Shown here piece after piece: positions 3,775 through 54,746 of a stretch of DNA of 64,000 bases. The notes beneath the pieces are model-generated. The model saw only the letters and a list, made by a program, of their open reading frames with translations. It made no database searches and was not told the DNA's origin. Numbering within the stretch: position 1 is the first letter of the stretch; every line of letters begins with the position of its first letter. A program made the translations under genes and the position numbers. The DNA lies in sequence record NC_061450.1; one strand, 5' to 3'.

Positions 3775-3817
3775 AATCACACCTGTTTGCTTAATTTAAA
3801 CGAACGATAATAAACAC

Positions 3818-5638: not shown

Positions 5639-6181
5639 TTGGAAATTTTCGTAAGCATGAGCGCCCCTGCAACGGATAAAGACCGTTACAAGATGGGCAG
5701 CAGTGACGGCCAAACAGGTCGTGCAGATCTCAGTGAATACACCAATCTGGAGAAGAAACTTCGCATCAACGATGAAGCCGCAGAAAAGCAAAAGATGGCT
5801 AAACAGGCTAGTGGCGACAATTCTGTAAATAAGAAGAAAGCAGCCACTAAACCTAACAGCGATTCAGACAAGTCTGGAGGCGACGATGCAGAAGAAGACG
5901 AAGGATTCGGCGAGGACGATGACGACGGATTCGGCGACGACGACACAGATGGATTTGAATCTGATGATGGAGACGACTCCGATGCAGGAGACGATAGCTC
6001 AGACGATTCTGCCGATGATTCAGCAGATAGCAAGCCCAAGAAGGGTGCAGGAAAGAAATCAAAATCCGATGATGAAGATGGATCTGACGAATCCTCAGGT
6101 GATGAGGGGTCTGACGATGATGCGGATGATTCAGGAGAAGATGATGACGAGGAGCTTGACGAAAGCGACTTGGAAGAGTGA
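5639..6181 (+). CDS. Highly acidic low-complexity protein with MEIFVSMS leader
   Basis: TTG start 5639 after TAGGAG RBS; Asp/Glu/Ser/Gly-rich C-terminal two thirds. Confidence 0.7.
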   Translation: MEIFVSMSAPATDKDRYKMGSSDGQTGRADLSEYTNLEKKLRINDEAAEKQKMAKQASGDNSVNKKKAATKPNSDSDKSGGDDAEEDEGFGEDDDDGFGDDDTDGFESDDGDDSDAGDDSSDDSADDSADSKPKKGAGKKSKSDDEDGSDESSGDEGSDDDADDSGEDDDEELDESDLEE

Positions 6182-6644
6182 CGTTGAACAGTACGAGGCC
6201 CTGCGCGATTGCTTGATTGCCTTGACGTACAGCCTCAAGATCATGACATACCCTGGTATCAGCGCAGCCATCCGTCAGCACAACGACTTGCTGGTCATGA
6301 GCAACATCTGGTTCACAGGTAAGCCCGCTGACCAGTGGCGCTTTTACTCCATGAATCAAGATGGCGTTCGTAATCTGACTTGGCTTGTAAATCAGTTCAC
6401 AGGCATTGCTGCTTACTTTGGTCTGACAGGCGTTATCCACAGCTATCACGCATGTAACGCCGAACCTCGTATGTCGTCTATACTTGCTCGATACAATCAT
6501 GCTATTCGTGATCGTGCTCAGTGGCAGCGTAGCCGACAACTCGAATCTCGTCACCAAGAATTTAATCTCCCTAGAACAGCCTTTTATGTATTGAGGGAAA
6601 AATCTACAAATGGCCAAGTACAAATCACTGGCGAAGGCTCCTAA
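6144..6644 (+). CDS. Hypothetical protein (start uncertain)
   Basis: Normal-complexity 3' part of ORF 5886..6644; ATG 6144 has CAGGAG upstream. Confidence 0.5.
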   Translation: MTRSLTKATWKSDVEQYEALRDCLIALTYSLKIMTYPGISAAIRQHNDLLVMSNIWFTGKPADQWRFYSMNQDGVRNLTWLVNQFTGIAAYFGLTGVIHSYHACNAEPRMSSILARYNHAIRDRAQWQRSRQLESRHQEFNLPRTAFYVLREKSTNGQVQITGEGS

Positions 6645-7266
6645 AAAGAGCGCAGCCGCAAAGGCCGCTGAGGAACGTGCAAAAGGAATGCGACAAGTCA
6701 AGCGCGGTAACTATGAACAGGGTGTCAAAACTGTTTCAGCCGCAGGCAAGACTCGTCGCATGACGCAGGGTGAGAAGCGTGCAATTGCTATCACCCCGTT
6801 TACTCCCAAGCAGGTGCCTCAGCCTCCACAAACTGCAAAGACGTTGAAAGGCCTGAGCCTCAACGGTCTGATCAAAGCAAGTCCTCGCCTCATGAAAGAG
6901 AACGCGATGGAGTGCTATGTAACTTCTGTGAAACGTGGCAAGACAGCAAAAGCCCTGCCGTTTATCACAGCCAAAGTCCGACACAAAGATCCCCTGCGTC
7001 CTAACAAGACTGTGCGTTTGCATGAGACGATGATCATTGGTCTGGATGACCCGTTCAAACCCATCACCAAGCAAAAGCGTGTGATGTGTAGCTGTACCTG
7101 CGAGAACTGGGTGTTCATGTGGGAATACGCCAACGCAGAGCACGGCGCAGCGCGTATCATCTACGGCAACGGTGAGCCGCCAGGCTTTACCAACCCAGGT
7201 CATGCACCAGGTCTTTGCAAGCATCTTCTTGCGCTTGCAGACAAAATGAAAATTAACGGGGACTAA
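6610..7266 (+). CDS. SWIM-type zinc-finger protein
   Basis: CSCTC...(long insert)...LCKHLLAL = CxC...CxH pattern; basic N-terminus. Confidence 0.7.
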   Translation: MAKYKSLAKAPKKSAAAKAAEERAKGMRQVKRGNYEQGVKTVSAAGKTRRMTQGEKRAIAITPFTPKQVPQPPQTAKTLKGLSLNGLIKASPRLMKENAMECYVTSVKRGKTAKALPFITAKVRHKDPLRPNKTVRLHETMIIGLDDPFKPITKQKRVMCSCTCENWVFMWEYANAEHGAARIIYGNGEPPGFTNPGHAPGLCKHLLALADKMKINGD

Positions 7267-7271
7267 CTATT

Positions 7272-7454
7272 ATGACCACACAGCAATCCAAAACAAAAGC
7301 CCAGCCTGTTCAAAATCAGTGCATCCAATGTGCTGCCTCAGAAATGATGCAGATGTTGCATCGTGACCTGATGCGTGACGGCTATACCATCAACCGCGAT
7401 CAGCACGGTACTGCCGTTTCAATCTCTAAGAACGGACGTACCATCGAAATCTGA
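7272..7454 (+). CDS. Small hypothetical protein
   Basis: 60-aa ORF tiling between neighbours. Confidence 0.55.
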   Translation: MTTQQSKTKAQPVQNQCIQCAASEMMQMLHRDLMRDGYTINRDQHGTAVSISKNGRTIEI

Positions 7455-7465
7455 TAGGGACAGCA

Positions 7466-8005
7466 ATGCCAGAAGACTTTTATAGCTCAGACACTCACTA
7501 TACGCATGAGCGAACACTGAAACTCAGCCGACGCCCATTCGCCAATGTTACCGACATGGATGAGACCATGATACTGCGTACCAATGCGGCTTGTCGCCAT
7601 GTTGACACGTTGTATCATCTTGGTGATTTTGGTGACTACCGTATAGTGAGTCGTCTTGTTCCTCGTGTCATCCTCATCTGTGGCAACTACGAACACGACG
7701 ATATTAATAAATTTTATGGTGGTGACTTTCAGGAATTCCGTAAACGCCTTATGCAGCTTGGATTTAAAGACGTTATCCTAAACAGCATGGGCCATCGCGG
7801 TATGTGGCTGAATCACTTTCCTAACGGACGTGTTGAAGATCGTTTCAACCTGTTCGGTCACATTCATCGTTTGCAGATGGTCAAGCACAACGGTCTGAAT
7901 GTGGGTGTTGATTGCCATGACTACGCTCCAGTGAGCATGGAAACGGTTGAGTTTTACCGTGACGCCATTCAGAATCACTACGACGACGAGGTGTTTAATC
8001 CATGA
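7466..8005 (+). CDS. Calcineurin-like metallophosphoesterase
   Basis: Motifs SDTHY, HLGDF, CGNYEH, LNHFP, FGHIH, NVGVD. Confidence 0.85.
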   Translation: MPEDFYSSDTHYTHERTLKLSRRPFANVTDMDETMILRTNAACRHVDTLYHLGDFGDYRIVSRLVPRVILICGNYEHDDINKFYGGDFQEFRKRLMQLGFKDVILNSMGHRGMWLNHFPNGRVEDRFNLFGHIHRLQMVKHNGLNVGVDCHDYAPVSMETVEFYRDAIQNHYDDEVFNP

Positions 8006-8256
8006 GAGACTTCTATCCTGTGATCTGTAATCGCTATCGTCTTATTCTGGATGCCGAACCCGTGTGCAATCCTGAGCAGCCCACCAGCTTGGGACACCTT
8101 GTGTGGATGCTTGACCAGATTCAGACAAACACGGAACAAAGCCTGACCAAGAAACATCGCTGGTTGGGATGTGTGCAAGGCATCATGATTGCTCAGGGAA
8201 TGATCACTGTAAATGATGAGCGTGACGCAACACGCAACATCTTTAACGGGAGTTAG
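8002..8256 (+). CDS. Hypothetical phage protein (RWLGxVQG motif)
   Basis: 84 aa, ATGA overlap; KHRWLGCVQG. Confidence 0.7.
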   Translation: MRDFYPVICNRYRLILDAEPVCNPEQPTSLGHLVWMLDQIQTNTEQSLTKKHRWLGCVQGIMIAQGMITVNDERDATRNIFNGS

Positions 8257-8258
8257 CA

Positions 8259-8789
8259 ATGAACAAAAAGCCAGTAGCACGATTTATTCGCGGCATGACT
8301 GCGCCTGTCTCTTCCGAGCTTTTGCCGAATCCTTACCACATCGGTCCTGTTTTTGTTGACGAACTGATTCAGCCTACAGAACTTGGTATTTATCCAGGAC
8401 GTCAGACACCATACGACAAAGACACATCGGTGCTTGCTGCACTTAGTGCTCAGGTCATGGCTCGCATGTTAAGCCAGCAGGTAGCACAGGCTGTTGATAA
8501 AGCATTGCAGCCCAACGTTCCTATTCAGGCCGAAGTCAAGTTTGATCACAGCACAAACGGAATGGATATCGCAATGCATATCCAACACTGGGCGGAAGTT
8601 GTTCGTCAGACTCAGGTCGAAGAAACTGCGGTGCGTGTTCCACCTGAGCTGCGTGATCGCTTCAAAGCTGAGGGCTTTACTGATGACGAACTTGATCGCA
8701 TGGTCGTCTATCCAGAACGCTGCAACCTCACGCCTCCTAATTTAGAAATCGTCTACAAGCTGGACCCTAAAACTGATGGGGTGTCCTAG
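8259..8789 (+). CDS. Hypothetical protein
   Basis: 176-aa ORF in operon. Confidence 0.7.
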   Translation: MNKKPVARFIRGMTAPVSSELLPNPYHIGPVFVDELIQPTELGIYPGRQTPYDKDTSVLAALSAQVMARMLSQQVAQAVDKALQPNVPIQAEVKFDHSTNGMDIAMHIQHWAEVVRQTQVEETAVRVPPELRDRFKAEGFTDDELDRMVVYPERCNLTPPNLEIVYKLDPKTDGVS

Positions 8790-8988
8790 CTGTAGACGTG
8801 TTAGACGAATCTCTTACGGTGGACGTTCAGAAACGTTGGCAGCTCCAGCGCCTGAACCCGAAACCCTGAGTGCAGCACGTCTAACACCTCACGGGTGGGT
8901 AAAGACTTGTACCAAGTGTGGGCAAGTCTCCGACCCTTCACCTTTCGCTGATTCAATCACACAAACGTGTGGTTGCCAACGAGAGTGA
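8776..8988 (+). CDS. Small Cys-rich (zinc ribbon-like) protein
   Basis: CPSC, CTKC, CGC motifs in 70 aa. Confidence 0.5.
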   Translation: MGCPSCRRVRRISYGGRSETLAAPAPEPETLSAARLTPHGWVKTCTKCGQVSDPSPFADSITQTCGCQRE

Positions 8989-9006
8989 TAACGTAAAGGA
9001 AATATA

Positions 9007-9750
9007 ATGAGCAACGCGAAATTCCTCATTTCCGATCTACCTCGTACTGCTGACGTTTTATTCAGTCTTGAATTTTTCGTTCGCAATATAAATCAGATCC
9101 AAGATGACAAAATGCTTTTCCACAAGCAGCCTGGTCGTTGGGATAGCCTGAACGAAGCCACGACAACAAGTGACTGGCACTACTTGATTCAAACCCGCCT
9201 CGCCACGTTGAAGCATTTAGTCACACTGCCTCAGCCTACTGCCTTCCGTGACAGCTTTCGACAGTGTGATATTCGTTGGCGTGAAATTCATGAGGCCTAC
9301 TGTGATGAATATCCAGACCGAGTAGATACATTGCTTGCGATGGCGCCCACACCAGCCACAGCTCCTGCGTTCCAGAACGTCGAGTATACGCCTGAGAACT
9401 ACCGAGAGGTATACTGTGCTCAGTTTATGGAAGTTCAAAAGCAGATTGATGCTTACTGGCAGATGTGTGAATTTGAATATTTCCTGATTGGGTATACAGA
9501 AGGGTTTCTTCCAACACCTCGTGCTGATAGTGACTATCCCTATGAGCGTCTATGGTCTAGTGTTCAGAAACTCAGTTATAGACTGATGGACATTATGGTT
9601 GATAGCCGCATTAGTGGTGGCGTTAACGATGTATTACAGCGCTACGGCCGTGACGTTTCCATGCAGCATATCGTCGGTATGTGGAAGCACCTCAACCGCT
9701 GGACTGCTTACTCGGTAGTCCCCCATCAGGAGAAACGCAATGAGCAATGA
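9007..9750 (+). CDS. Hypothetical protein
   Basis: 247 aa; AAGGA RBS. Confidence 0.8.
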   Translation: MSNAKFLISDLPRTADVLFSLEFFVRNINQIQDDKMLFHKQPGRWDSLNEATTTSDWHYLIQTRLATLKHLVTLPQPTAFRDSFRQCDIRWREIHEAYCDEYPDRVDTLLAMAPTPATAPAFQNVEYTPENYREVYCAQFMEVQKQIDAYWQMCEFEYFLIGYTEGFLPTPRADSDYPYERLWSSVQKLSYRLMDIMVDSRISGGVNDVLQRYGRDVSMQHIVGMWKHLNRWTAYSVVPHQEKRNEQ

Positions 9751-10297
9751 AATGGTACCAGGTCTGGCAACACTTATTCAGGCAGTGGCAAGCGCTGTTA
9801 GCTTTGAATGCGACATTACTGATCAACAGTCAGGCAACGTGCCGATGTTCTCTCAGACTGTGGCGTTTGAAAACTTCAAACCTGTGATTGACTACAACGG
9901 CAGCAATACAGAAACCGCACAAGGCAAGCACCGTGTTATGGACATTGTGCTTTATCCTCGTCGCAACTTTGATTATGTTGCAGAGCACAGCCGCACTGTA
10001 TCCGAGCTTGAACTCGAAGCCCTTAAGAAGATCGGCGGTGAGATCTTAGTACCTCTGATTAGTGCAAATCAGATTCATGCAACGTCCCGTAGTTTTGTTC
10101 TGCCTGATGAACGTCCTGCAACTTTCATTCGCGTATTCAGCGCCAAAGACTATCCATGCGATGAGCACCCTGAAATGCTGTTGGGTCAGCCTCTGGGCAT
10201 GTATCATTGTCCTGCCTGCGGTGAAATGCAGATGGCAGGTTGTTTCCACCTTGACCGAGAGTTTGATGATGAAGGTAACCCTACCGATCAGCAATAG
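9740..10297 (+). CDS. Hypothetical protein with C-terminal zinc-ribbon-like motif
   Basis: 185 aa; CDEH...HCPACG...GCFH; AGGAG RBS. Confidence 0.75.
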   Translation: MSNEMVPGLATLIQAVASAVSFECDITDQQSGNVPMFSQTVAFENFKPVIDYNGSNTETAQGKHRVMDIVLYPRRNFDYVAEHSRTVSELELEALKKIGGEILVPLISANQIHATSRSFVLPDERPATFIRVFSAKDYPCDEHPEMLLGQPLGMYHCPACGEMQMAGCFHLDREFDDEGNPTDQQ

Positions 10298-10763
10298 TTC
10301 CGCACAAGATAGTGCTGGTGGCTATTGGGAAGTAAGACCTGATGGTCCATCTGAGCAAGTCATTCGTCAGATCGCAAGTTCTATTATGGACCTTGACGAT
10401 CTCGCCGATGACCTGCACGTCACACTGGCTTATGACAATACCAATCCGCAAGTTGCTGCCGAACTTATGCCTGACGCAGAGTTCCACGCAACAATTAGTG
10501 GCGTTGCTTTGTTTGGTGCTGGTGACAATTCAATTCTGGTACTGTTGTTGGACAGTCCTGAACTCCAGGCTGAGCATCAGCGTATTCATGCGTGCGGTTG
10601 TGCCAAGTTCGATCACAGCCCATACAACCCCCATGTAAGTATCAAGAAAGACGCTCAACAGCGTGACTTGGACTTTCTGCAGGATTGGTTGCTTAAGCCA
10701 GGCACTCCTCCGATTGACTTGCTGTTCACTGGTCAGCGCCGTGAACACTTGGATGCGGAATAG
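10266..10763 (+). CDS. 2H-phosphoesterase (T4 gp57B/Acb1-like or 2'-5' RNA ligase-like)
   Basis: Two HxT/S motifs: LHVTLAY and PHVSI; N-terminal GGYWEVRP resembles GLYVAAK of T4 57B; start uncertain (ATG 10266/10269). Confidence 0.75.
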   Translation: MMKVTLPISNSSAQDSAGGYWEVRPDGPSEQVIRQIASSIMDLDDLADDLHVTLAYDNTNPQVAAELMPDAEFHATISGVALFGAGDNSILVLLLDSPELQAEHQRIHACGCAKFDHSPYNPHVSIKKDAQQRDLDFLQDWLLKPGTPPIDLLFTGQRREHLDAE

Positions 10764-10771
10764 TAATATAT

Positions 10772-10797
10772 AACGGTGGCCCTGTGCCGCCGTTTTC
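10772..10797 (+). terminator. Intrinsic terminator
   Basis: AACGGTGGC-CCTGT-GCCGCCGTT followed by TT. Confidence 0.6.
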
Positions 10798-10816
10798 ACA
10801 TTCTAGGAGAAATTCT

Positions 10817-11131
10817 ATGGAAATCATTATCAGCCTCAGCAACACAGAACTGAATGCAGCTCCTGACCTGACTCCGCAAGCCCGTGCAGCCAACGACCGC
10901 GCTGAGCGTGAACGCCTTGAACTGGAGTACGCTGGTCAAGATCTCACAGACAAAGAGATCAAGAAACGGGAAGAAGAACAGAAAGAACTGGAAGAACAGC
11001 GCAAGAAAGATGACCCCGCTGCCCTGCCTAGTGAAATGCCCCAAGACATTGGACTGCCTAAATTCAAAGAAACAGACACCGCCACCAGCATCACAAACAG
11101 GCACGACAATTTGCCAGACGCCAAGATCTAA
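10817..11131 (+). CDS. Small charged protein with MEIIISLS leader
   Basis: TAGGAG RBS, ATG 10817; coiled-coil-like E/K-rich centre. Confidence 0.75.
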   Translation: MEIIISLSNTELNAAPDLTPQARAANDRAERERLELEYAGQDLTDKEIKKREEEQKELEEQRKKDDPAALPSEMPQDIGLPKFKETDTATSITNRHDNLPDAKI

Positions 11132-11133
11132 AA

Positions 11134-11142
11134 CTGTAAATA
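11134..11142 (+). promoter_or_regulatory. CTGTAAATA motif upstream of sigma-like gene
   Basis: Recurrent gene-junction motif. Confidence 0.45.
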
Positions 11143-11181
11143 TGCTACAACGAAAAGCACATTGCAAAAGGCATCTGTCGT

Positions 11182-12225
11182 ATGAAGAATAAGTCCAATC
11201 TCACAGGTGGCCAGATAGAAAACGTTATGGACACGCTGCTCCACGATTGTCTTCGCGAGATTGTTGAGAACACCGGCGTGTTCGACGTACAACTGACCTA
11301 CCTGCTGAGCTTGATTACATCAAACAAGAAGCGCAAGCCGCACAACGCTGCTAACCGTGACCGAGCAATCAGCCTTTTGATTCGTGCATTGAGTGTGCCT
11401 CGTGATCAAAAGATGCAGTACATTATGGAAGTGAAGATGGAAAGAAATTTCATCTACATGTTCCTGCAAAATGTAATTAACCGTTACTACCACCCATACG
11501 TAGACTTGTACCGCAAATATCTTGTTGTGCAAGACCCTGACCAACGTCGTCGCTATCAGGCACAGCTTGATGCCTATGTGCGTACTGTGGGTGCTGAGTC
11601 ACGTTCAAAGTTGTTTGTGGCACTCAACAACCTAAACGATCTCCTGCCTGTGTTCATGAGTTATTTCCACACTGTGGTAGATGACTTTTATCGCCTTTGC
11701 ACACAGCACGCAAAATTCTATGTTGATACCAATAGAGGCAAGCAGTATGACTCTAAGGACGTGCGCCAGAACTTCCTGCGCAACGTTATCATTGCTATCA
11801 ACAAGTATGACTCCAGTCGCGGTGCGATTGTGAGTTACGTCAAGTGGTGGATTCTGAATGCTCAAACGTGTAGCAGTTCAGAGCATGAGTATGGCATTGC
11901 CTATACCATACCTCAGACCCAGCGCAAGAAACTTGCGTCAGGGCAGGACACCACGTCAGTGAATTTCTCGGTTAGTCTTGACGCTCCCGCATCTGAGTCC
12001 GATGAAGGGATGGACGCATCGCTGCATCACAAGGTAAGTGATAGTCACCACCTTGAAGACACAGTGGACAGCGGACGACGTGCTGAGAAAATTGGGCTGT
12101 TGATCAAACGCATCGATCCCATGGGCATCGCCCGCCTCACAATGGATATACCTGAGGTGTTCGAGCCAGAAGAACGACAACACATGCGAAATCACATGCT
12201 CAAACAGGGCCTGTTAAACAAATAG
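11182..12225 (+). CDS. Phage RNA polymerase sigma factor, sigma70-family region 2/3-like
   Basis: AINKYDSSRGAIVSYVKWWILNA resembles sigma70 region 2.3-2.4 (AVDKF..RRGYKFSTYATWWIRQA); VSLDAP resembles region 3.2; no clear region 4 HTH. Confidence 0.7.
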   Translation: MKNKSNLTGGQIENVMDTLLHDCLREIVENTGVFDVQLTYLLSLITSNKKRKPHNAANRDRAISLLIRALSVPRDQKMQYIMEVKMERNFIYMFLQNVINRYYHPYVDLYRKYLVVQDPDQRRRYQAQLDAYVRTVGAESRSKLFVALNNLNDLLPVFMSYFHTVVDDFYRLCTQHAKFYVDTNRGKQYDSKDVRQNFLRNVIIAINKYDSSRGAIVSYVKWWILNAQTCSSSEHEYGIAYTIPQTQRKKLASGQDTTSVNFSVSLDAPASESDEGMDASLHHKVSDSHHLEDTVDSGRRAEKIGLLIKRIDPMGIARLTMDIPEVFEPEERQHMRNHMLKQGLLNK

Positions 12226-12229
12226 GAAT

Positions 12230-12238
12230 CTGTAAACA
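12230..12238 (+). promoter_or_regulatory. CTGTAAACA motif upstream of SSB gene
   Basis: Recurrent gene-junction motif. Confidence 0.45.
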
Positions 12239-12277
12239 GTAGCACAAGCAGATTCTACTCAATATTGAGGATTTAAG

Positions 12278-13561: not shown

Positions 13562-13571
13562 TGTGACCAAC

Positions 13572-13602
13572 AGGGGTGGCTTATCGCCGCCCCTTTGTTT
13601 TT
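13572..13602 (+). terminator. Intrinsic terminator
   Basis: AGGGGTGGC-TTATC-GCCGCCCCT then TTGTTTTT. Confidence 0.75.
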
Positions 13603-13623
13603 CTCAACAGAGTAATCTACGAC

Positions 13624-16185: not shown

Positions 16186-16225
16186 TCGTGTGGGCATGGA
16201 TGCCCCAACAACTAAGGAGTAACTT

Positions 16226-16606
16226 GTGGGAAATATCTATCCTGACCAGATTGGCTATATCGGCACCATCAAGCAAAGCCTTGACCAAGGTGCTGTGCGG
16301 CGTGACCTGACGATTCGCACGATGCTTGACGCTGAGCAGGCGATTGACCTTGGTCCTGATTACAAAGGTAGCAAAGTGTTCATCATCGGTATGAACGTTA
16401 TGCCTAAAGTGTATGACTCATTGGTCAATCACTTTGACCCGTGTGAAGTAGTAGCAGATGTTGAGCGTGGTTATCTCGGCAAAGTGCTGGGTCTGCCTGT
16501 GCTGGCTTCTGGCAATGTACCGCCTGACAGTGTGAGTTGTGCTCTGTTACTGCCTGACGACGATGATGTTTATATCATCGGTGCCGTGTTGTCCGTAGTA
16601 GTCTAA
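16226..16606 (+). CDS. Hypothetical protein resembling a capsid-protein P-domain segment
   Basis: AAGGAG RBS, GTG start; FDP...RGYLGKVLGLPVLASGNVP. Confidence 0.6.
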   Translation: MGNIYPDQIGYIGTIKQSLDQGAVRRDLTIRTMLDAEQAIDLGPDYKGSKVFIIGMNVMPKVYDSLVNHFDPCEVVADVERGYLGKVLGLPVLASGNVPPDSVSCALLLPDDDDVYIIGAVLSVVV

Positions 16607-16652
16607 ATCCAAATCAATCTATCTCGATAGCCCAAAGTGGCAGGAGAATTTT

Positions 16653-17393
16653 ATGAACGTAATCCAAGTCAAATCAAATGAAGTCCTTGAAGGCATGTTG
16701 CACGGCTTTATGCACAAGGGTGTCGCCGACGAAGCCCACACGCATTCTCCTCCTGATGTGGTTTATATCAGCACAAGTGACCGTGCCGCTGAGTTTGAAG
16801 TTCGCGGCATTCTGCGCAAGAACAACGTGCCCAACAACTTTTTAGTATCTGGCTACGGTAATCTGTTGTACAAGATCAGAGGCAGAACGTTGGGCAGCGT
16901 TGTTGTATTTGTGTCTCCCGAGTGTTTGCACGTTGACCGTGATTTGATGACAGGATGTCTGGCTCAACTTATTGAGCACAACACATCGGTAGGCTCTCAG
17001 TGGGTTCGAGAATCTTCTATGGTGATTCATGGTCCAAGCAGTGCCGTTATGGTTGAAGGGCTGCAGGCTCGTTTGTATCGGAACTATCTCGAACGCAACC
17101 CAATGTTCTATGCAGGCAGCACGGACCTTGAAAGCAATATCACCATGCAAGAATTCCATGACTTGATGGAAGAAACAAGTCTGTTGAAGTCACCTATGGA
17201 GAAGCAGATTCTGGCTTCGTATTATTTTGGTGATGAGTTTATGCAGCTAAACACCAAGCAGTTCTATAATGACCTATGCACTCTCCATCAGCGTATGCCT
17301 TCTCCTAATAGTTTGGTACTTAGTCCTAAGTTGATGTATCATGTGTACTGTCAGCGTATTTCATATCTGCGTCCTATGATTGCAACACTGTAA
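16653..17393 (+). CDS. Hypothetical protein
   Basis: 246 aa; CAGGAG RBS. Confidence 0.8.
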   Translation: MNVIQVKSNEVLEGMLHGFMHKGVADEAHTHSPPDVVYISTSDRAAEFEVRGILRKNNVPNNFLVSGYGNLLYKIRGRTLGSVVVFVSPECLHVDRDLMTGCLAQLIEHNTSVGSQWVRESSMVIHGPSSAVMVEGLQARLYRNYLERNPMFYAGSTDLESNITMQEFHDLMEETSLLKSPMEKQILASYYFGDEFMQLNTKQFYNDLCTLHQRMPSPNSLVLSPKLMYHVYCQRISYLRPMIATL

Positions 17394-17399
17394 ACAATG

Positions 17400-17428
17400 A
17401 GAGCGGCTTCGGTCGCTCTTTTACTTTT
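17400..17428 (+). terminator. Intrinsic terminator (UUCG hairpin)
   Basis: AGAGCGGC-TTCG-GTCGCTCT-TTT; preceded by CTGTAAACA (17388-17396). Confidence 0.75.
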
Positions 17429-17439
17429 AAGGACTAAAC

Positions 17440-18492
17440 ATGGCTGAAACCAAGTTCTACCAAGAAATCCATCAAGCTACGATAGAGACCAATTTCTCCA
17501 TCGGCGTCACTCGCAAGCATCTTACGTCTCAGCTTGAAAAACTGATTGAGACTAAGAACGGTAAGCTGCCTCATTATGGTTTTTCTTTTGAGGAATTCGG
17601 CAGCTTTGTAGGAGACAAGTATACACCTAATCCTGATATGGACTTACGCCAACAGGCAATGGCAGGCTGCACTCAAGTCATGTGTCACTTCATGTGGTCT
17701 TTCTCCAAGGGATCGTTTGAGCCAGAGCAGGAACTCAAAGAACACATCATCAAAAGCGATCCACCAAAAGTTCTGCCTTGTGCCATGTTGCGACAATTGC
17801 CTAGCTGGTCTCAATGGATTGACTGCGACGTTGCTGTTGATATAACTGAAAACGGCGTAATAGAACAGACGCTTAGCCTTACTGGCTTTTGGGCAACTTA
17901 CTGCAATGTAGGTGGCCGACTAAACTTATGCCTGACTGCTTTAGGTCTGTACTATCCGAAAGGTGATCACAACAGCGAAGATGATGACGCCCATTCTCAG
18001 GTTGCTCGTGTTTCCTGCATGTTTGAAATAGAAGAAGACAGACCTCTGGAAGATACGTGCTTGGTTGATGCATTCTTCATGAGCGCCAAAGGTAATCATG
18101 GCCTTTATGACGATCATCCAGAGTTCGAACCCATCAGCAACATGATCAAGCGCTGGGCCAAGCAGTCCGTAAACATACTTGTGTTTGTGGCTTCTGAGAT
18201 TGATAGCTTGCCTGCCGAAAATCGTACAGGCATTGTTCCACGACGTAAGGGCAAACACTATCGTCTTGCCACTGTTACCAAAGAGCGACGCTGGACAGTT
18301 GGACAAGAGTTCCTTACACCTATTCGGGAATACGAAGAAGCCTTGCGCACAATGACTGTAGCACAAAAGCGTGCTGCCCACATTCGTCGCGGTCACTATC
18401 ACAGCTTCTGGCGCGGCCCTCGTGATGGACAGCGTGAATTGTTTAGCAAATGGTTGCCTCCGTGTGTTGTCAGAGGAACTTTGGCAGACTAA
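17440..18492 (+). CDS. Hypothetical phage protein with C-terminal HxRRGH...W motif
   Basis: 350 aa; AAHIRRGHYHSFWRGP...KWLPPCVV. Confidence 0.8.
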   Translation: MAETKFYQEIHQATIETNFSIGVTRKHLTSQLEKLIETKNGKLPHYGFSFEEFGSFVGDKYTPNPDMDLRQQAMAGCTQVMCHFMWSFSKGSFEPEQELKEHIIKSDPPKVLPCAMLRQLPSWSQWIDCDVAVDITENGVIEQTLSLTGFWATYCNVGGRLNLCLTALGLYYPKGDHNSEDDDAHSQVARVSCMFEIEEDRPLEDTCLVDAFFMSAKGNHGLYDDHPEFEPISNMIKRWAKQSVNILVFVASEIDSLPAENRTGIVPRRKGKHYRLATVTKERRWTVGQEFLTPIREYEEALRTMTVAQKRAAHIRRGHYHSFWRGPRDGQRELFSKWLPPCVVRGTLAD

Positions 18493-18514
18493 GAATATTC
18501 TTAGACCTTTTCTC

Positions 18515-18550
18515 TAATTTGTAGTGCAGGCAAGAAGTGCCGCATACTAT
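18515..18550 (+). promoter_or_regulatory. TAATWTGTAGTGCRGGCAAG box, copy 1
   Basis: 18/20 identity to 20672-20691; followed by TACTAT. Confidence 0.5.
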
Positions 18551-18568
18551 CAATTGGGGATCACCTTT

Positions 18569-18838
18569 ATGTGTCAAAGAACTCTGGTACGTCTGCGTTA
18601 CCATTCGCGTAACGCAAGTTGGATAAACCGAACGGCCGAACCGCTGTCACTCAAACGAACAGCGGCTCAGGTAGACTGTGGTGTGTTTACTACAGCAGTC
18701 AAAGGATGTCGAACGGTTCAACTCTCACCGAATTTAGTCAACTTTTATCAGGGCCAAGATCTTGTCGGACAGAGTGTCTGGCATCAAAGCCCTGAGGGCG
18801 ATACTGAACTCCAGTTCCGTCTTCTCGCACCACACTAA
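18569..18838 (+). CDS. Possible small protein (or non-coding structured region)
   Basis: ATG 18569 after GGGGA; region also contains several hairpins. Confidence 0.3.
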   Translation: MCQRTLVRLRYHSRNASWINRTAEPLSLKRTAAQVDCGVFTTAVKGCRTVQLSPNLVNFYQGQDLVGQSVWHQSPEGDTELQFRLLAPH

Positions 18839-18955
18839 TAAAAACAATCACACAGCAACCTCCTAAGGGCTGCCAGAGACTTTGTGCTTTGGTAGCCTTT
18901 TCTCGTTTTGACGATAATTTTTGCCTACGATAAGACACGATTGTATGGAGCCCCG

Positions 18956-19612
18956 ATGGAAATCATGATTTCGCTGTCGTTCAAACAAATAGAGCCGCCC
19001 ATCGTATCATACGATCCGCAAAAGGCGCCACACGTTAACGACAACAGCAAGCCCGGCCAAGTATTTGACCTGCACACTTTGCAGCAAATGAGTTACCTGG
19101 ACATGAAGAAAGTCAAAGGTGATGCAGGCGCAAAGTATGCCAAGGTCATCGCACAGTGGCTCAACGGACAACGTAATATCGAGGTCAAGTTTCGCGTGTC
19201 CAAGCGCAGCAAGATCTCGATCGAGGTTAAGAACACCAAGCAGCTTGCAGCACGTTACACTGAAATCTATCTCCTGAGTCCTGAGAAGACTAAATCAAAG
19301 GATTGGGAACTGATTGGCACAGGCCCTCACGGCAATGAGAACGTTGTGCAGCTTGGTGGACGTATGCAACCTGATGTGTTGTATGCAACCGCTCGCAGCA
19401 TGTTGGGCGCTCACCTGCCTACAGACGAATGGCCTGGTGACAGCACCCGCGAGCAGGTAATCTTCAAATTTGATAAGATGCGCAGTGAGCACCGCAAGGT
19501 ACCTGACCGTGCATACAAATATGTAAACAACAACGAAACCCAATTGATCACCATGATGCAAGATGGCATGAGCATCGATGAGATTGTGGCTTGGGTACTA
19601 AACCAATACTGA
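18956..19612 (+). CDS. Hypothetical protein with MEIMISLS leader
   Basis: ATG 18956 after GGAG. Confidence 0.75.
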   Translation: MEIMISLSFKQIEPPIVSYDPQKAPHVNDNSKPGQVFDLHTLQQMSYLDMKKVKGDAGAKYAKVIAQWLNGQRNIEVKFRVSKRSKISIEVKNTKQLAARYTEIYLLSPEKTKSKDWELIGTGPHGNENVVQLGGRMQPDVLYATARSMLGAHLPTDEWPGDSTREQVIFKFDKMRSEHRKVPDRAYKYVNNNETQLITMMQDGMSIDEIVAWVLNQY

Positions 19613-19620
19613 GGAATCCT

Positions 19621-20454
19621 ATGAGTATCATTTCTATCTCGGCCACAAAAGCCCAAAAAGACGGTGCCAAGTATTTGTTCGGCACCAAAGGTGAAAGCAT
19701 TCTGTCCGTGCTTGAGTCTCTGTCGAAAGCCAAAGAACTGCGTAGCTCGCACCTCAACGGTCTGATCCTTATGCTGAAAGATGCAGAAGACGACGAGTTG
19801 ATCAAGTTCAAAAACAGTGCTGGTGGCAAGCGTACCGTTGAAGCAGCCAAGCTGTTAGCGACTGCCAAGACTCTGGGCACCAGCCTGAAAGGTCTGCGTG
19901 GCATTAAAGTGCCTAGCAAATGGATTCAAGATCACGATGACGCTAAAGCTGCTGGTGCTGTCGAAACTAAAACACATCGCGCTACAGGCAAAGGCACCAA
20001 GCCTCAGAAAGCCGAGAAGGTTGCTAACCCTCAGGCTCCTGAATCTGAGACCGTTGGTGCTGTAGTTGATCGTCGCTCGAAAAAAGCAAAAGTCGGGCCA
20101 GGCAAGACCAACGGTAAGTCTCAAGCCACGCTGGTGGACGAGCTTTCTGAAATGCAGCCTCGCAAGTTCTCTAAGCTGGGGATTGAGCGAGCTTCCAATT
20201 ACCTACATGCGGCACAAAGAGTTTTGCTTGACGCTTTACCGTGGAATGCGATCGGCACTTCCCAGGGAGGCAATGCCGAAGAGCTGAATGTCCTAGGAAA
20301 TAAAGGGAAACAGTTGCTTAATTTCTATGTTGAAGATGATGCGTGGTACGTTCGTGACCGCATCAAGAAAACAACGACCAAGTTAGGTGCTTTCGATATT
20401 TCCCAAGTTATAGATCTTGCCAAAGCTGCTGCAAAAATCAAAGGACCTGCGTAA
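19621..20454 (+). CDS. Basic (Lys/Ala-rich) hypothetical protein with MSIISIS leader
   Basis: ATG 19621 after GAGGA. Confidence 0.75.
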   Translation: MSIISISATKAQKDGAKYLFGTKGESILSVLESLSKAKELRSSHLNGLILMLKDAEDDELIKFKNSAGGKRTVEAAKLLATAKTLGTSLKGLRGIKVPSKWIQDHDDAKAAGAVETKTHRATGKGTKPQKAEKVANPQAPESETVGAVVDRRSKKAKVGPGKTNGKSQATLVDELSEMQPRKFSKLGIERASNYLHAAQRVLLDALPWNAIGTSQGGNAEELNVLGNKGKQLLNFYVEDDAWYVRDRIKKTTTKLGAFDISQVIDLAKAAAKIKGPA

Positions 20455-20469
20455 CCAAGTTACGTCAAG

Positions 20470-20496
20470 AAAGGGTGGCTTTGGCTGCCCTTTTCT
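20470..20496 (+). terminator. Intrinsic terminator
   Basis: AAAGGGTGGC-TTTG-GCTGCCCTTT-T. Confidence 0.75.
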
Positions 20497-20671
20497 CGTT
20501 CTGTCATAAAAATTTACACACCAATCATAAATAACCTCATCCTGCCTATCACTACATCCCATCGATTGATCACCTGCTGCATGCCTGCTGTTCCGGCCTG
20601 GACTAAGACCATTCTTATTAAGCTCTGGTACTGCCTACGATAATTGAATACACGTCTGTTTGATTTCTCGT

Positions 20672-20708
20672 TAATATGTAGTGCGGGCAAGCTACCCGCC
20701 TTGACTAT
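20672..20708 (+). promoter_or_regulatory. TAATWTGTAGTGCRGGCAAG box, copy 2
   Basis: 18/20 identity to 18515-18534; followed by GACTAT, then GAGGA RBS of next gene. Confidence 0.5.
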
Positions 20709-20724
20709 TAATGAGGAATATTCC

Positions 20725-22569
20725 ATGATCGAAGTAAATAGCTTTGCTGAACTACGCACCACTCCGCCTACCAAAGCGGGTGACACTGCGTATCTGAAAC
20801 GTTACTACGACAAGGACAGCAAGTTCCGTGGCGGTGGTTGGTTTGTTGGGTTCCCACAAAAGAACACACCAGCCGATGACGGCGGTATCAATGCTGTAGG
20901 TAAAGACGGTAAGGGCAATCCGTTCTTCTGGCAACGTGTTGTTGATGACCCTGCTGCAATCAACATCCTGCACTTCGGTGCGCGTCTGGACGGCAAGACC
21001 GATGACTCAGATGCCTATCGCCGTAACTTCATGTGGGTGTACAACATGAAAGACGGCAGCGACACTCTGGGCGTAAGCATTCCATCAGGTCCTATTCTGT
21101 TAAGCCCGATGGACTTCACCGACCTTGGTGAGATTCCGGTGTTCGCCATGTATGGTGATACGCGCTGTGAGAAAGGCTGGCGTCCACGCGTTCGCATCGT
21201 CAGTGACAAATCCAACAAGCAGGTGATCAAAGTCAATGCCCGCCGTGTTGTGATTCACGGCTTCAACTGGAACGGTCAGTGTACAGCACAGGTCAATGGC
21301 AAGAAGGTTGATCCAGAGACCATCAAAGGCGCTATCATGCCTGAGCAGCGTTCAAACAATCAGATCTTCTTTGAGAACGTCTGTCCTGCTGGTCAGTTTG
21401 TTGGCATTCGCTGCTTCCGTGGTGAGAACGTTGGTGGTTCAGCGTTGAAGTTCCAGGATACCTTGGACACCTCAATCACTGAAATCTACGGCAGCAAGAT
21501 CTTTGGTGCTATGATTGAAGCCAAGTGGTCAAACACCGTTGCTGGTGGCTGGAACCATTCTACGGCTGTACGTCTCGAAGACGGTAACTTCCAGTTCGGT
21601 TACGGCCCTGCTGTGTTGGACATGCCTCGTATGACTCAGGCTATCATGAAGAACATCTGGATTGAGCACACACGCTTCCCGGGTAACCTGAATGATGGTC
21701 AGTGGGTGTTTGAAGCTAACTCAATCGAAAGCTCTGACAACCCTCTGAACCTCGCCAACACTCGCTGCGTGGTCAATGGCTTCTACTTCCAGGGCCAGGG
21801 CACCATGAGCCTTGAACGTAAAGCAAGCACGGACAACTGGCTGAGTGGCTATGAGCGCGGCAACATCCGCATCGAGACCTACGGTATCTTGATGACTGAC
21901 GCCTGCTTCCGTCCTGGCTACTACACTGGTTACAAGATCACGAACAATACCGATCAGGACAAGTGGTTCTACATCGGTAGCTACTCGTTCCCTAAAGTCA
22001 ACCAGACGTGGCAGATTGAACTGCTGGGCACTGCACCAGGTGTTGTTCCTAACACCAAGCTGCAACAGCCTACGCAGATGGATGGCATGGGTCGTCGTGT
22101 GATCACCATGACACGCTGCATCAAACCGCAGAAGAAAGTATATGCGGACATGCACATGGAAGGTACCGACGCCATTGCGGATGTTGTGTATCAGCGTCTG
22201 TGGGAAGACTACGGCAAAGTGTGGGTCAAGCTGAAAGCCAACAGTGGTGACACTATCTTCAACATCACCACAACTGGTCCAACTCGCTTCGAAGCAGGTC
22301 AGTGTACCCTCTTCTCTGATGGTCCGTGTGAATGTACTGATCCAACTCTGGCTGAAATGACTGTCAGCGTTGAGAAGAATCAGAAAGACTATGCCCGTCC
22401 TCAGCAACGTTTCAGCCTGCACAACGGTCTGGCTGGCATCGGTGCAAACGAGCAGGGTATGGTTACCATGCAAACGGCAGAAGGAAAGGCGCCTAAAGAT
22501 CTTTCCAAACCGGCGGGCTTCACCTCGATTAATATCAACGGTGTTGACCGAGTTGTTCCCTACTACTAA
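20725..22569 (+). CDS. AmsF-like / tailspike-like beta-helix protein (putative polysaccharide-binding or depolymerising)
   Basis: N-terminus MIEVNSFAELRTT...LKRYYDKDSKFRGGG recalls Erwinia/Pantoea proteins annotated AmsF; ILHFGARLDGKTDDSDA is a pectate-lyase-fold N-terminal motif; tail-fibre-like end ININGVDRVVPYY. Confidence 0.65.
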   Translation: MIEVNSFAELRTTPPTKAGDTAYLKRYYDKDSKFRGGGWFVGFPQKNTPADDGGINAVGKDGKGNPFFWQRVVDDPAAINILHFGARLDGKTDDSDAYRRNFMWVYNMKDGSDTLGVSIPSGPILLSPMDFTDLGEIPVFAMYGDTRCEKGWRPRVRIVSDKSNKQVIKVNARRVVIHGFNWNGQCTAQVNGKKVDPETIKGAIMPEQRSNNQIFFENVCPAGQFVGIRCFRGENVGGSALKFQDTLDTSITEIYGSKIFGAMIEAKWSNTVAGGWNHSTAVRLEDGNFQFGYGPAVLDMPRMTQAIMKNIWIEHTRFPGNLNDGQWVFEANSIESSDNPLNLANTRCVVNGFYFQGQGTMSLERKASTDNWLSGYERGNIRIETYGILMTDACFRPGYYTGYKITNNTDQDKWFYIGSYSFPKVNQTWQIELLGTAPGVVPNTKLQQPTQMDGMGRRVITMTRCIKPQKKVYADMHMEGTDAIADVVYQRLWEDYGKVWVKLKANSGDTIFNITTTGPTRFEAGQCTLFSDGPCECTDPTLAEMTVSVEKNQKDYARPQQRFSLHNGLAGIGANEQGMVTMQTAEGKAPKDLSKPAGFTSININGVDRVVPYY

Positions 22570-22583
22570 AAGTGAGATCAATC

Positions 22584-23030
22584 ATGTCTTATAAAGTAGA
22601 ACTCTCTGTTGTAACTTCTGGCGGTAATGAACTTCCTGCTGATCTGAAAGAGTTTGCTGATGCTCATGGCATCACCTACGAAGTCACTGATGCAGGTTCA
22701 GATCGCAGTGTTGTGACCTTTGAGTCACAGGGTCGCGATCAGCTGGAAGATATGATTCGTCAGTCGTATGCGCCTTCAAAAGAAACAGAATGGTCGCAGT
22801 TCATTTCTCAGATTCACGCAGAAGGCGTTGATGCAGGCCAAGAGTCTTTCCTGACTCAAGGCACTCGCGAAGTTCCTCCTCACGTCTACAACGAAGACGA
22901 AGCTGTTGAACCTGCGGCTGACTCGGATGATGAAGACGAAATCGCCGAGCACGACGGTGAAGAAGATGGCGAAGAACGTATTAGTTCCCAGACCATCGCT
23001 TCTGACGCCGAGAAAGACGATCACAAGTAA
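22584..23030 (+). CDS. Acidic hypothetical protein
   Basis: ATG 22584; E/D-rich. Confidence 0.75.
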   Translation: MSYKVELSVVTSGGNELPADLKEFADAHGITYEVTDAGSDRSVVTFESQGRDQLEDMIRQSYAPSKETEWSQFISQIHAEGVDAGQESFLTQGTREVPPHVYNEDEAVEPAADSDDEDEIAEHDGEEDGEERISSQTIASDAEKDDHK

Positions 23031-23031
23031 T

Positions 23032-23040
23032 CTGTAAATA
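23032..23040 (+). promoter_or_regulatory. CTGTAAATA motif (TAATCTGTAAATA, identical to 41083-41095)
   Basis: Recurrent gene-junction motif. Confidence 0.5.
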
Positions 23041-23085
23041 AAATTCGAGGTACAATGACGTGCCTTGTTTAACATGGAGATTAGT

Positions 23086-23352
23086 ATGTCTGTTCAGCTT
23101 GAACTATCGAAACAGAATTTGGCGGATATCGAACTGCACACCTATAGTCGCATGACTATGACCGAGCTGGTAGATAAACTCCGCGCTGATGGTATCGTGG
23201 TTCGTTCCATTACTCCGTTCCGCCCTACTGGCACACCGATTCGCATCGATGTTGTCCGCAGTGATTTCGAGCGGTACATGGAACTCTATCGTGCGCCTGA
23301 GCCTATCAATGGTGAGTGGCAACCGTTAGAAGATGCATACGTGCAATACTAA
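23086..23352 (+). CDS. Hypothetical protein
   Basis: ATG 23086 after GGAG (alternative ATG 23074). Confidence 0.7.
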   Translation: MSVQLELSKQNLADIELHTYSRMTMTELVDKLRADGIVVRSITPFRPTGTPIRIDVVRSDFERYMELYRAPEPINGEWQPLEDAYVQY

Positions 23353-54302: not shown

Positions 54303-54746
54303 ATGAATGACCAGATGGCTAGTGCTGTTGTGGAGATACGTGCGGTTACCCGCGAACCGGAATCAATCGACAGTGTGACGGACATGCACCACGTTGTTAT
54401 CTCTATGCATGAACGCATCGTTGAAAGCTCTTACGTGGTTCGCTGTACTTTGTCTGGCGTGTCCAGCAAGGGTCACCAGATAGCTTGCATCGTTAACGTC
54501 CGACCAATCGGCATCAAGCCTGAGGCTGAATTGCAGTATATGTTGCGTCGTGTTTGTCGTCATTTGAAACGCATGGCCAATGAAAGAAATCTCGGCTTCA
54601 CCGTCAGTCATTCAACTTATGATCTCTTTGTCGCACAGGAACACAAAAATGTCAAAGAAAGAAAATCGCCAAAAGCTCCACGCGCTAATCGTCGCGAACA
54701 TTCCACTCACACAACATTTGCTGCGGGAGTCCTTGCAGGAATCTGA
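54303..54746 (+). CDS. Hypothetical protein
   Basis: AGGAGGT RBS; 3' end overlaps next gene by 98 nt. Confidence 0.65.
   Translation: MNDQMASAVVEIRAVTREPESIDSVTDMHHVVISMHERIVESSYVVRCTLSGVSSKGHQIACIVNVRPIGIKPEAELQYMLRRVCRHLKRMANERNLGFTVSHSTYDLFVAQEHKNVKERKSPKAPRANRREHSTHTTFAAGVLAGI

Follow-up and report, generated by a model that had tools for sequence, protein, structure and literature searches.

An N-terminal peptide tag on unrelated proteins of Erwinia phage pEa_SNUABM_5 and related jumbo phages: a candidate capsid-targeting address

The stretch of DNA analysed here (the window, 64,000 nucleotides of the sequence record NC_061450.1) belongs to the Erwinia phage pEa_SNUABM_5, a jumbo phage with a genome of 267,169 bp (267 kb), and carries on its plus strand three genes whose products begin with a common eight-residue pattern, called the tag below. 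The first of them, gp237 (5639..6181, 180 aa), starts from a TTG codon and has the tag in residues 1-8 (window 5639-5662), downstream of which the product is a polyacidic disordered protein with a net charge of -44. The second, gp247 (10817..11131), encodes an acidic protein of 104 aa with the tag in residues 1-8 (10817-10840) and is followed directly by the gene for gp248, the phage sigma factor. A G+C-rich hairpin with a T-run, resembling a terminator, occupies 10773..10797 of the same strand, after the stop of gp246 and before the ribosome-binding site of gp247. The third, gp255 (18956..19612, 218 aa, tag in residues 1-8, 18956-18979), is preceded at a distance of 42 nt by ATAATTT (18914..18920, plus strand), a variant of the promoter-like motif CTAATTT, and the consensus form occupies the equivalent place in Yoloswag and SNUABM_7. 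A preliminary description of this DNA had proposed the three starts (5639 with its TTG, 10817 and 18956) and a good ribosome-binding site for each gene, and both agree with what we find: the starts are the annotated CDS starts of gp237, gp247 and gp255, and a GGAG-type ribosome-binding site is present at each.

Orthologues of gp237 with the tag occur in Yoloswag, where the start is also TTG, in Alexandra-like phages, in Y3 and in the Dickeya clade. Among gp247 orthologues (32-46% identity) M1, S6, L7 and S8 are invariant and residues 9-24 are not alignable; the Dickeya-clade orthologues have at their start a related alternating strand, with acidic residues in place of serine. A gp255 homologue with 39% identity possesses the core I-x-I-S-L-S, offset by two residues, and in 1.84 billion proteins gp255 has no more than two cluster representatives. 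The AlphaFold2 model of gp255 is a poor one (pLDDT 60); its first 36 residues score below 50, which places the tag outside the modelled fold. A fold search with this model gave no significant match (the top one, PsiB with E 0.34, is not evidence), an ESM Atlas search with gp255 gave no usable match, and Pfam and PHROG scans assigned no function to gp237, gp247, gp255, gp256, gp194, gp199, gp209, gp210 or gp226.

Four weaker variants of the tag had also been suggested for the window, and conservation among the relatives leaves only part of them standing. The gp256 protein (19621..20454, plus strand, 277 aa) has a degenerate N-terminal tag, one residue shorter, which is kept in Yoloswag and is replaced in Y3 and SNUABM_7 by a different, longer N-terminus; it is a borderline bearer. 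It seems doubtful that gp246 (10266..10763, plus strand), an Acb1-like 2H phosphodiesterase (Pfam Acb1 PF23474, E 6e-13), belongs to the set, its N-terminus being not kept in the Y3 or SNUABM_7 orthologues. The remaining two, gp259 (22584..23030) and gp260 (23086..23352), both on the plus strand, are unsupported as members because their orthologues lack the pattern: that of gp259 in Yoloswag is without it, and that of gp260 in SNUABM_7 has no serine at position 6.

In the six-frame translation of all 267,169 bp the strict pattern E-I-x-[IV]-S-[LM]-S has six matches, five of which lie directly behind the start codon of a long annotated ORF, namely gp237, gp247, gp255 and, elsewhere in the genome, gp194 (minus strand, genome position 160908, 725 aa) and gp209 (minus strand, genome position 171686, 146 aa); the sixth is internal to gp145. 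The chance expectation is 7.8e-5 in 352 N-termini and 0.12 across the six frames. Looser forms, M-K-[LV]-x-[LV]-S-L-S or offset by one residue, are found on gp126 (Nudix), gp155 (NAD ligase), gp226 and gp199, and with them SNUABM_5 has about ten tag-headed genes, the full consensus being M-[EKQ]-[ILMV]-x-[IVL]-S-[LM]-S, frequently with Ala next. A position matrix picks out, at a score of at least 12, 5-7 of the predicted N-termini in each genome, compared with 0.01 on average when residues 2-30 are shuffled; since it was derived from the very instances it scores, the count of the regular expression is the independent test. More than 40 instances across genomes have the tag starting with residue 1; inside proteins it is nearly absent, and its frequency is 100 to 3000 times higher N-terminally than internally. 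Both the genome-wide scan of N-termini and the comparison with internal positions had been put forward as checks in the preliminary description, and with five strict N-terminal matches and this N-terminal excess chance is out as an origin of the pattern; the shared tag is real, and stronger than it had been described.

At positions 6 and 8 of the tag all six serine codons are used, with AGY and TCN interchanging, five or more leucine codons are in use at position 7, and the DNA 5' of the tagged genes is unrelated except for the ribosome-binding site. Such variation at synonymous sites, together with the unrelated upstream DNA, means that selection acts on the peptide, and a DNA repeat or an RNA operator is out as its source. 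Paralogy of the bearers is also out: when the first ten residues are taken away no similar pair is left (best E-value 0.11). The tag is essentially confined to position 1 and selected as a peptide; with residues 1, 3, 5 and 7 hydrophobic and serines at 6 and 8, it looks like a short beta-strand of amphipathic character in a flexible tail.

It might still be argued that the pattern reflects no common protein function at all, being produced by selection on translation initiation (an A-rich second codon and weak mRNA structure), by an RNA operator for a translational repressor like RegA of T4, or simply by a common first beta-strand. GAA is indeed the second codon in 18 of 19 cases with Glu, compared with 59% GAA genome-wide, the position-2 residues E, K and Q are mostly encoded by VAA codons, and a hairpin with a T-run is situated just before several tagged genes. 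We nevertheless regard this explanation as very improbable, for the AGY-TCN switches at Ser 6 and Ser 8 and the five or more codons of Leu 7 leave no conserved RNA sequence, five strict matches stand against about 8e-5 expected with a strong N-terminal enrichment, and in the Nudix protein the tag lies within an extension ahead of the fold, the PaBG orthologue lacking this 13-residue extension.

Between 5 and 10 tag-headed genes were found in each of Yoloswag, Y3, Alexandra, SNUABM_7, the Dickeya JA phages and four distant metagenomic jumbo contigs; the tag is absent from PaBG, from Lu11 and from 0.95 Mb of unrelated viral DNA. The proteins similar to gp210 have it in Y3 and SNUABM_7 and have none in SNUABM_5 and Yoloswag, so that, as in the Nudix case, orthologues gain and lose the tag, and it moves between protein families. 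In the Dickeya phages and distant jumbo contigs tagged proteins match the ART-PolyVal domain PF18760 (E 2e-27, 2e-25 and 4e-5), and tagged proteins of the relatives also give a match to the SprT-like domain PF10263 (E 5e-10) and to internal parts of PHROG families of 1664 and 2900 positions. Neither ART-PolyVal nor SprT-like domains were found on the tagged proteins of SNUABM_5, and ART-PolyVal is detectable neither in gp199 nor in Y3_206.

The tagged set of SNUABM_5 includes a Nudix hydrolase, the polyacidic protein with net charge -44 and a polybasic one with net charge +19. To these may be added gp183, a 1937-aa SNF2-type helicase, whose N-terminus has a shortened tag that is kept in three relatives, and which is orthologous to PaBG gp202 (30% identity over about 1900 aa); mass spectrometry of purified PaBG virions assigned PaBG gp202 to band 1, at 221 kDa (PMC7412058 Table 1). 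Most bearers are encoded amid genes of replication, recombination and transcription, with the clamp loader, Mre11, helicases, an exonuclease and the sigma factor among their neighbours, and on the annotated starts of the head-module proteins gp145 to gp152 the tag was not found. Of the 60 genomic occurrences of the motif CTAATTT, 29 fall no more than 90 nt upstream of a gene start. The motif precedes structural operons (tail sheath, gp148, gp156, gp159, gp163), the tagged operons gp194, gp255, gp200-199, gp210-209, gp227-226 and gp127-126, and also the operon containing Mre11.

From the observations above, the tag is most likely a portable peptide address, placed on otherwise dissimilar proteins throughout a large clade of jumbo phages, and its likeliest destination would be the assembling prohead. 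The tag may dock on a component inside the head, for example the portal, the inner face of the capsid or a protein of the scaffold or core; the docked bearers would then be enclosed, exit with the DNA at the next infection and act there first, a logic that would be shared with two known signals, the T4 capsid-targeting sequence (CTS) carried by Alt and the internal proteins and the one at the N-terminus of P1 DarB. That the tag is such a capsid-targeting and ejection address may well be true, and we stop just short of calling it probable. The wider suggestion, that one sequence-defined address for capsid loading and ejection could serve the whole clade, comprising Erwinia, Dickeya and Yersinia phages and environmental relatives, we would make with slightly more reserve.

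Of the known systems the T4 CTS is close in format. It is an amphipathic helix with a terminal Glu, after which the prohead protease cuts; on IPI-III and Alt it occupies, like the tag, about ten residues at the extreme N-terminus of otherwise dissimilar proteins whose genes lie outside the head gene cluster. In sequence the two have no resemblance, the tag being beta-strand-like with two invariant serines and no recurring cleavage site, and the tag occurs on about 12 orthologous groups as against four or five T4 proteins with a CTS; packaging, which belongs to the T4 system, would here be a predicted function. Among the packaged T4 cargo are an ADP-ribosyltransferase and small proteins of high charge (PMC9024508, PMC5512222), and the tagged set, here or in the relatives, likewise contains ART-domain proteins and small proteins of polyacidic or polybasic character. 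In P1, DarB, an anti-restriction protein of about 250 kDa of the helicase/methylase type, is packaged by an N-terminal signal and thought to enter the cell; its first 30 residues suffice for loading of a reporter, whereas nine do not, and the authors saw no N-terminal consensus among the Dar proteins (PMC9024508). The giant helicase gp183, whose PaBG orthologue is found in virions, is comparable to DarB, while the clear eight-residue consensus on many proteins of many phages is what distinguishes the tag from the P1 case. The ART-PolyVal and SprT-like (MPTase) domains on tagged proteins of the relatives recall the polyvalent proteins of Iyer, Burroughs, Anand, de Souza and Aravind (2017), in which these domains are predicted to be packaged and injected, as deduced from MuF/portal fusions and gene context, with no short N-terminal address described (PMC5512222); in the phages considered here the domains mostly reside on separate small proteins, each with a tag of its own.

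Several indirect lines of evidence favour the capsid as destination: the tag is N-terminal, as are the proven T4 and P1 signals (PMC9024508), the relatives place it on ART-PolyVal and SprT-like proteins, the set holds very acidic and very basic small proteins similar to the T4 internal proteins, the PaBG orthologue of gp183 is a virion protein, several tagged operons have a promoter-like motif in common with structural operons, and the first 36 residues of the gp255 model are unstructured, as would suit a free tail. Against it speak the absence of the tag from PaBG, the one relative whose virion proteome was consulted, and from the head-module proteins, the location of most bearers among genes of replication, recombination and transcription, the unusual character of a ligase and a Nudix enzyme as head cargo, the occurrence of CTAATTT also before the operon of Mre11, and the fact that the ART-PolyVal and SprT-like bearers are those of the relatives and not of SNUABM_5. 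The preliminary description had seen in the pattern a packaging/cleavage address for head cargo injected into the host. Its packaging half is contradicted by none of the results and is favoured indirectly by the N-terminal format, the effector domains and the virion orthologue of gp183; as to its cleavage half, neither [LI]-x-E nor another recurring protease site was found within 40 residues past the tag across orthologous groups (L-x-E triplets are isolated in gp237 and gp194 and not general), so that a T4-like later removal of the tag is unsupported.

The neighbourhood of the bearers leads to another reading, in which the tag would be a replisome docking strand that binds the phage beta-type sliding clamp gp177, or other replication hub, and recruits accessory factors. 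The T4 clamp gp45 binds a motif common to the polymerase, gp33 and gp55, bacterial Hda has an N-terminal QLxLxL, and the hexapeptide clamp motif has an alternating hydrophobic pattern, to which the alternating hydrophobics of the tag are similar. The phage does encode a three-domain DnaN-fold clamp, gp177 (AlphaFold2 pLDDT 86; Foldseek TM 0.70-0.76 to bacterial clamps), found by its fold, as Pfam models of the T4 gp45 clamp and of the DnaN N-terminal domain have no match in the genome, and it encodes a clamp loader, gp211, and a family A polymerase as well. The polymerase has, after an Ala-rich linker, a conserved C-terminal tail with the core I-x-I-S in 20 relatives, but the agreement extends to three or four residues only, and C-termini in general show no enrichment of the core; a clamp-loader scan of viral contigs gave one useful locus, the rest being swamped by a poly-Lys pattern. 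Beta-clamp motifs (QL[SD]LF, QLxLxL, the latter at the Hda N-terminus) share with the tag a short alternating-hydrophobic strand, a possible N-terminal position and unrelated carriers in DNA metabolism, but they may be N-terminal, C-terminal or internal, whereas the tag is fixed at residue 1, has neither Gln nor an aromatic residue, keeps its serines invariant and appears on proteins outside DNA metabolism too. ADP-ribosyltransferases, a SprT-like peptidase and polyacidic proteins would be unexpected clients of a clamp, and PaBG retains the clamp and yet has no tag, which altogether makes this reading clearly improbable in our opinion. Less improbable, if still unlikely, is a tag for some other common partner in the infected cell, that is an N-terminal degron for a host AAA+ protease such as ClpXP, which would allow a timed removal of the bearers, or a strand for targeting to a chaperone or condensate. 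The strictly N-terminal position with retained Met (residue 2 being E, K or Q), the disordered tail in the gp255 model and the mixed functions of the bearers are in line with it, and so are the variants in which three hydrophobic residues come after Met-Lys, since they resemble one class of N-terminal ClpX motif. We know of no degron or chaperone motif that contains the invariant S-L-S, position 2 is mostly Glu and not basic, the tag is limited to one phage lineage while host proteases are universal, and the over-representation of effector-type domains among the bearers would be left unexplained.

The proteins which jumbo phages bring in with their DNA are largely unknown, and they bear on how bacterial defences are evaded in the first seconds of infection. 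To our knowledge, N-terminal capsid-targeting signals have been shown by experiment only for T4 and for P1 DarB, and neither gives a consensus that could be searched, so that a consensus tag on a dozen protein families in many genomes would provide a list of testable candidates. If the capsid address is real, an injected first-strike proteome could be read from the genome sequence, and it would include enzymes (ADP-ribosyltransferases, a SprT-like peptidase, a Nudix enzyme and a giant helicase) as well as polybasic proteins and polyacidic ones that resemble DNA mimics. Eight residues might then be enough to load foreign proteins into these large heads, which would be a simple handle for Erwinia and Dickeya phages already studied in crop protection. 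Should the destination be a different one, for example the clamp, a protease or some compartment, the tag still marks out in each genome about ten uncharacterised proteins as a set that is co-regulated or co-localised.

Two further observations concern single bearers. A hairpin similar to the one before gp247 lies ahead of the gp247 orthologues of Yoloswag, Y3 and SNUABM_7, as well as ahead of the gp209 orthologues, and gp199 joins into one product regions that in Y3 are separate tagged proteins.

Bases 186,001-250,000 of the 267,169-bp genome of Erwinia phage pEa_SNUABM_5 (NC_061450.1) make up the window. This jumbo myovirus of the genus Rivsvirus is grouped with Yoloswag, Y3, Alexandra and the Dickeya JA/AD1 phages, the Pseudomonas phages PaBG and Lu11 being more distant. 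The shared leader that the preliminary description saw on gp237, gp247 and gp255 is borne out: all three coincide with CDS starts in the annotation and have good ribosome-binding sites, the start codon of gp237 being TTG. A six-frame search of the genome with the strict pattern (E-I-x-[IV]-S-[LM]-S) returned six matches, and in five of them the motif comes straight after the start codon of a long gene in the annotation. Besides the three it brought up gp194 (725 aa) and gp209 (146 aa), on the minus strand at genome positions 160908 and 171686, which are an independent confirmation, since the pattern had been defined on the other three. From amino-acid frequencies one would expect 7.8e-5 strict N-termini in 352 proteins and 0.12 matches across six frames. 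Looser forms of the tag, as we call the octapeptide M-[EKQ]-[ILMV]-x-[IVL]-S-[LM]-S (Lys at 2, Leu/Val at 3 and 5, or a one-residue shift), start gp126, gp155, gp226 and gp199, and gp183, a 1937-aa SNF2-type helicase, begins with a form two residues shorter. Scores of at least 12 bits against a position matrix occur at N-termini, taken from rough gene calls, 5-7 times per genome versus 0.01 after shuffling, a figure that measures contrast and not discovery, since the matrix was built from the tag instances themselves. The tag is 100 to 3000 times commoner at N-termini than internally; an equal frequency had been named beforehand as one of the grounds for giving up the idea.

The weaker variants proposed at that stage fared less well: gp256 is borderline (one residue shorter, kept in Yoloswag only), gp246 is doubtful, and membership of gp259 and gp260 is not supported. 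gp246 (window 10266-10763) is annotated as an RNA 2',3'-cyclic phosphodiesterase and is probably an anti-defence gene, because it matches the anti-CBASS family Acb1 (PF23474, E 6e-13) and the 2H phosphoesterase superfamily. A tag-like octapeptide also lies 11 residues past an ATG in the open frame of a putative gene at window 54577-54640, plus strand (genome 240610).

Upstream of the five strict sites no common DNA was found beyond the ribosome-binding site. Among 29 tag instances from four genomes all six serine codons are present at Ser 6 and Ser 8, AGY and TCN both being frequent, and no one-step silent change leads from one to the other; at Leu 7 at least five codons occur. This free codon choice, together with the unrelated upstream DNA, shows that selection is on the peptide and rules out both a repeated DNA element and an RNA operator. 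Codon bias is seen at codon 2 only, where GAA encodes Glu in 18 of 19 cases; it is in line with the common preference for an A-rich codon there, which may also explain the alternation of E, K and Q at this position.

As judged by BLASTP, in which no pair was significant after removal of the first ten residues, the bearers are unrelated to one another. They include the polyacidic gp237 (net -44), the polybasic gp209 (net +19) and the small acidic gp247, whose gene comes just before that of the phage sigma factor. In gp126, a Nudix hydrolase, the tag stands ahead of the fold; gp155 is a LigA-type NAD-dependent ligase, gp194 a member of a large family without assigned function, and gp255 is almost without relatives. 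The tag is found on about twelve orthologous groups somewhere and is gained and lost among orthologues: the PaBG Nudix protein starts about 13 residues later, without it, gp210-like proteins carry it in Y3 and SNUABM_7 and lack it in SNUABM_5 and Yoloswag, and the ligase tag is weak, and absent in Y3. gp199 (642 aa) unites regions which Y3 encodes as separate tagged proteins. In gp247 orthologues (32-46% identity) M1, S6, L7 and S8 never vary and residues 9-24 do not align; a 39%-identical gp255 homologue keeps the core with a two-residue shift, the remainder of its N-terminal 20 residues being not alignable, and residues 1-36 of gp255 are unstructured in an AlphaFold2 model that is poor overall (pLDDT 60). 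The gene for gp194, which lies 25 kb upstream of the window (genome 158731-160908, minus strand), bears the annotation exonuclease SbcD, but its product has no metallophosphatase domain; the true Mre11/SbcD is the adjoining gp193, which does have one. Over its N-terminal third gp194 is a member of a very large family, with more than 213 homologues of which some carry DUF4116, and in this family A-L-x-P-S-x-Y-R..W is conserved immediately after the tag.

With a degenerate DNA pattern we obtained eight start-codon matches in Yoloswag versus none with the reversed control, clear tagged sets in Y3, Alexandra and SNUABM_7, and nothing convincing in PaBG and Lu11. Counting starts that combine the tag with a ribosome-binding site, the whole genomes of Yoloswag, Y3 and SNUABM_7 have 5-8 each and that of PaBG none. 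The region of the sigma-factor gene was compared in 34 viral contigs. Where this factor is at least 76% identical, every locus has a tagged gp247 orthologue and all loci but one a tagged gp237 orthologue; in the Dickeya clade, where identity is about 70%, two of four loci have the tag on the gp237 orthologue, and that of gp247 starts with a related alternating strand, acidic residues replacing serine. The gp194 family retains the tag at just 35-40% identity over the N-terminal third. Across 77 viral loci with gp194 homologues, Erwinia phages have 3-4 and Dickeya phages 6-7 tagged starts per 22 kb, and four distant jumbo contigs (130-287 kb) have 2-4; in 60 unrelated loci (0.95 Mb) there is no tagged start. 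This spread and this absence make the tag a trait of one lineage, a large clade of jumbo phages.

We consider it quite possible, though somewhat short of probable, that the tag is, much as the preliminary description proposed, an address for capsid loading and ejection. The T4 targeting sequence loads small polyacidic and polybasic proteins, and the presence of gp237 and gp209 among the bearers likewise favours packaging. So do tagged proteins of the Dickeya phages and distant contigs: among them are ADP-ribosyltransferases of two ART-PolyVal kinds (E 2e-27, 2e-25, 4e-5) and one SprT-like metallopeptidase (E 5e-10). Such domains are hallmarks of polyvalent proteins, which Iyer et al. inferred to be head-packaged and co-injected with DNA, the packaged ADP-ribosyltransferase Alt of T4 being the prototype (PMC5512222). 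Against PHROG, the tagged ART protein hits stretches inside giant families. Further support comes from PaBG gp202, a 221-kDa helicase-like protein that forms band 1 of purified virions (PMC7412058, Table 1): gp183 is orthologous to it by mass and sequence (30% identity over about 1900 residues), therefore this phage family packages giant DarB-like helicases. Yoloswag, Y3 and SNUABM_7 retain the shortened gp183 tag, which is at the N-terminus, as is the signal of P1 DarB (PMC9024508). Against packaging stand the head-module proteins, none of which is tagged at its annotated start, the ligase and Nudix bearers, which would be odd head cargo, and the effector-type bearers, which are in relatives and not in this genome. 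No protease site recurs after the tag, which also speaks against packaging and leaves the suggestion of a cleavage address unsupported.

The tagged genes lie mostly in replication neighbourhoods, among primase, exonuclease, SSB, UvsX, sigma factor, Mre11/Rad50, helicases and clamp loader, which also counts against packaging and would suit docking to the clamp or replisome, a function we regard as quite improbable. The alternating hydrophobic residues of the tag recall bacterial clamp-binding hexapeptides, and the phage has a clamp of its own: gp177 (genome 137064-138242, minus strand), without a Pfam match, is by its model (pLDDT 86), which superposes on bacterial DnaN clamps with TM 0.70-0.76, a strongly diverged sliding clamp of DnaN fold. 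The family A polymerase gp179 (genome 138514-141672, minus strand) has a conserved basic C-terminal tail after an Ala-rich linker, with the core I-x-I-S in 20 relatives, and this is likely a clamp-interaction tail; its likeness to the tag is however thin, just three or four residues, and the tag core has no general enrichment at C-termini. Another common partner, such as a protease, a chaperone or a compartment, is unlikely, and that the tag has no shared protein function is very improbable. Address signals sit strictly at residue 1, as the tag does and clamp docking motifs do not, which favours the capsid-loading address over docking. No published description of the motif was found in the literature searched, and the tag is best filed, provisionally, with N-terminal capsid-targeting signals.

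The motif CTAATTT (long form (G)CTAATTT), a candidate phage-specific (late or middle) promoter, occurs 60 times genome-wide, 29 of these within 90 nt upstream of a same-strand gene start. It stands ahead of structural operons (sheath, gp148, gp156, gp159, gp163) and of the operons gp194, gp255, gp200-199, gp210-209, gp227-226 and gp127-126, several of the operons with the motif being without assigned function; in the window, motifs of this type precede gp234 (3791-3797), gp254 (18514-18520) and gp255 (18914-18920). It suggests that the tagged operons bearing it would be co-expressed with virion genes, and a motif common to structural and tagged operons again favours packaging.

Terminator-like hairpins with a T-run lie directly upstream of the ribosome-binding sites of gp247 (window 10773-10797) and gp209 (genome about 171700-171745, minus strand); their position is conserved in Yoloswag, Y3 and SNUABM_7, and they may serve the tagged genes as attenuators or as stabilising 5' stems. 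For gp152 (genome 108299-109303, minus strand) the true start probably lies upstream of the annotated one at 109168: over 45 further N-terminal residues the Yoloswag orthologue is 75% identical, and it has the full tag at its start, and the extended frame in SNUABM_5, starting at 109303, has a form two residues shorter. gp149 (genome 106016-107095) and gp218 (176656-177624), both on the minus strand, are annotated as M34-type metallopeptidases; gp149 adjoins the prohead protease and has a KMPT-N domain (PF20294, E 7.5e-27).
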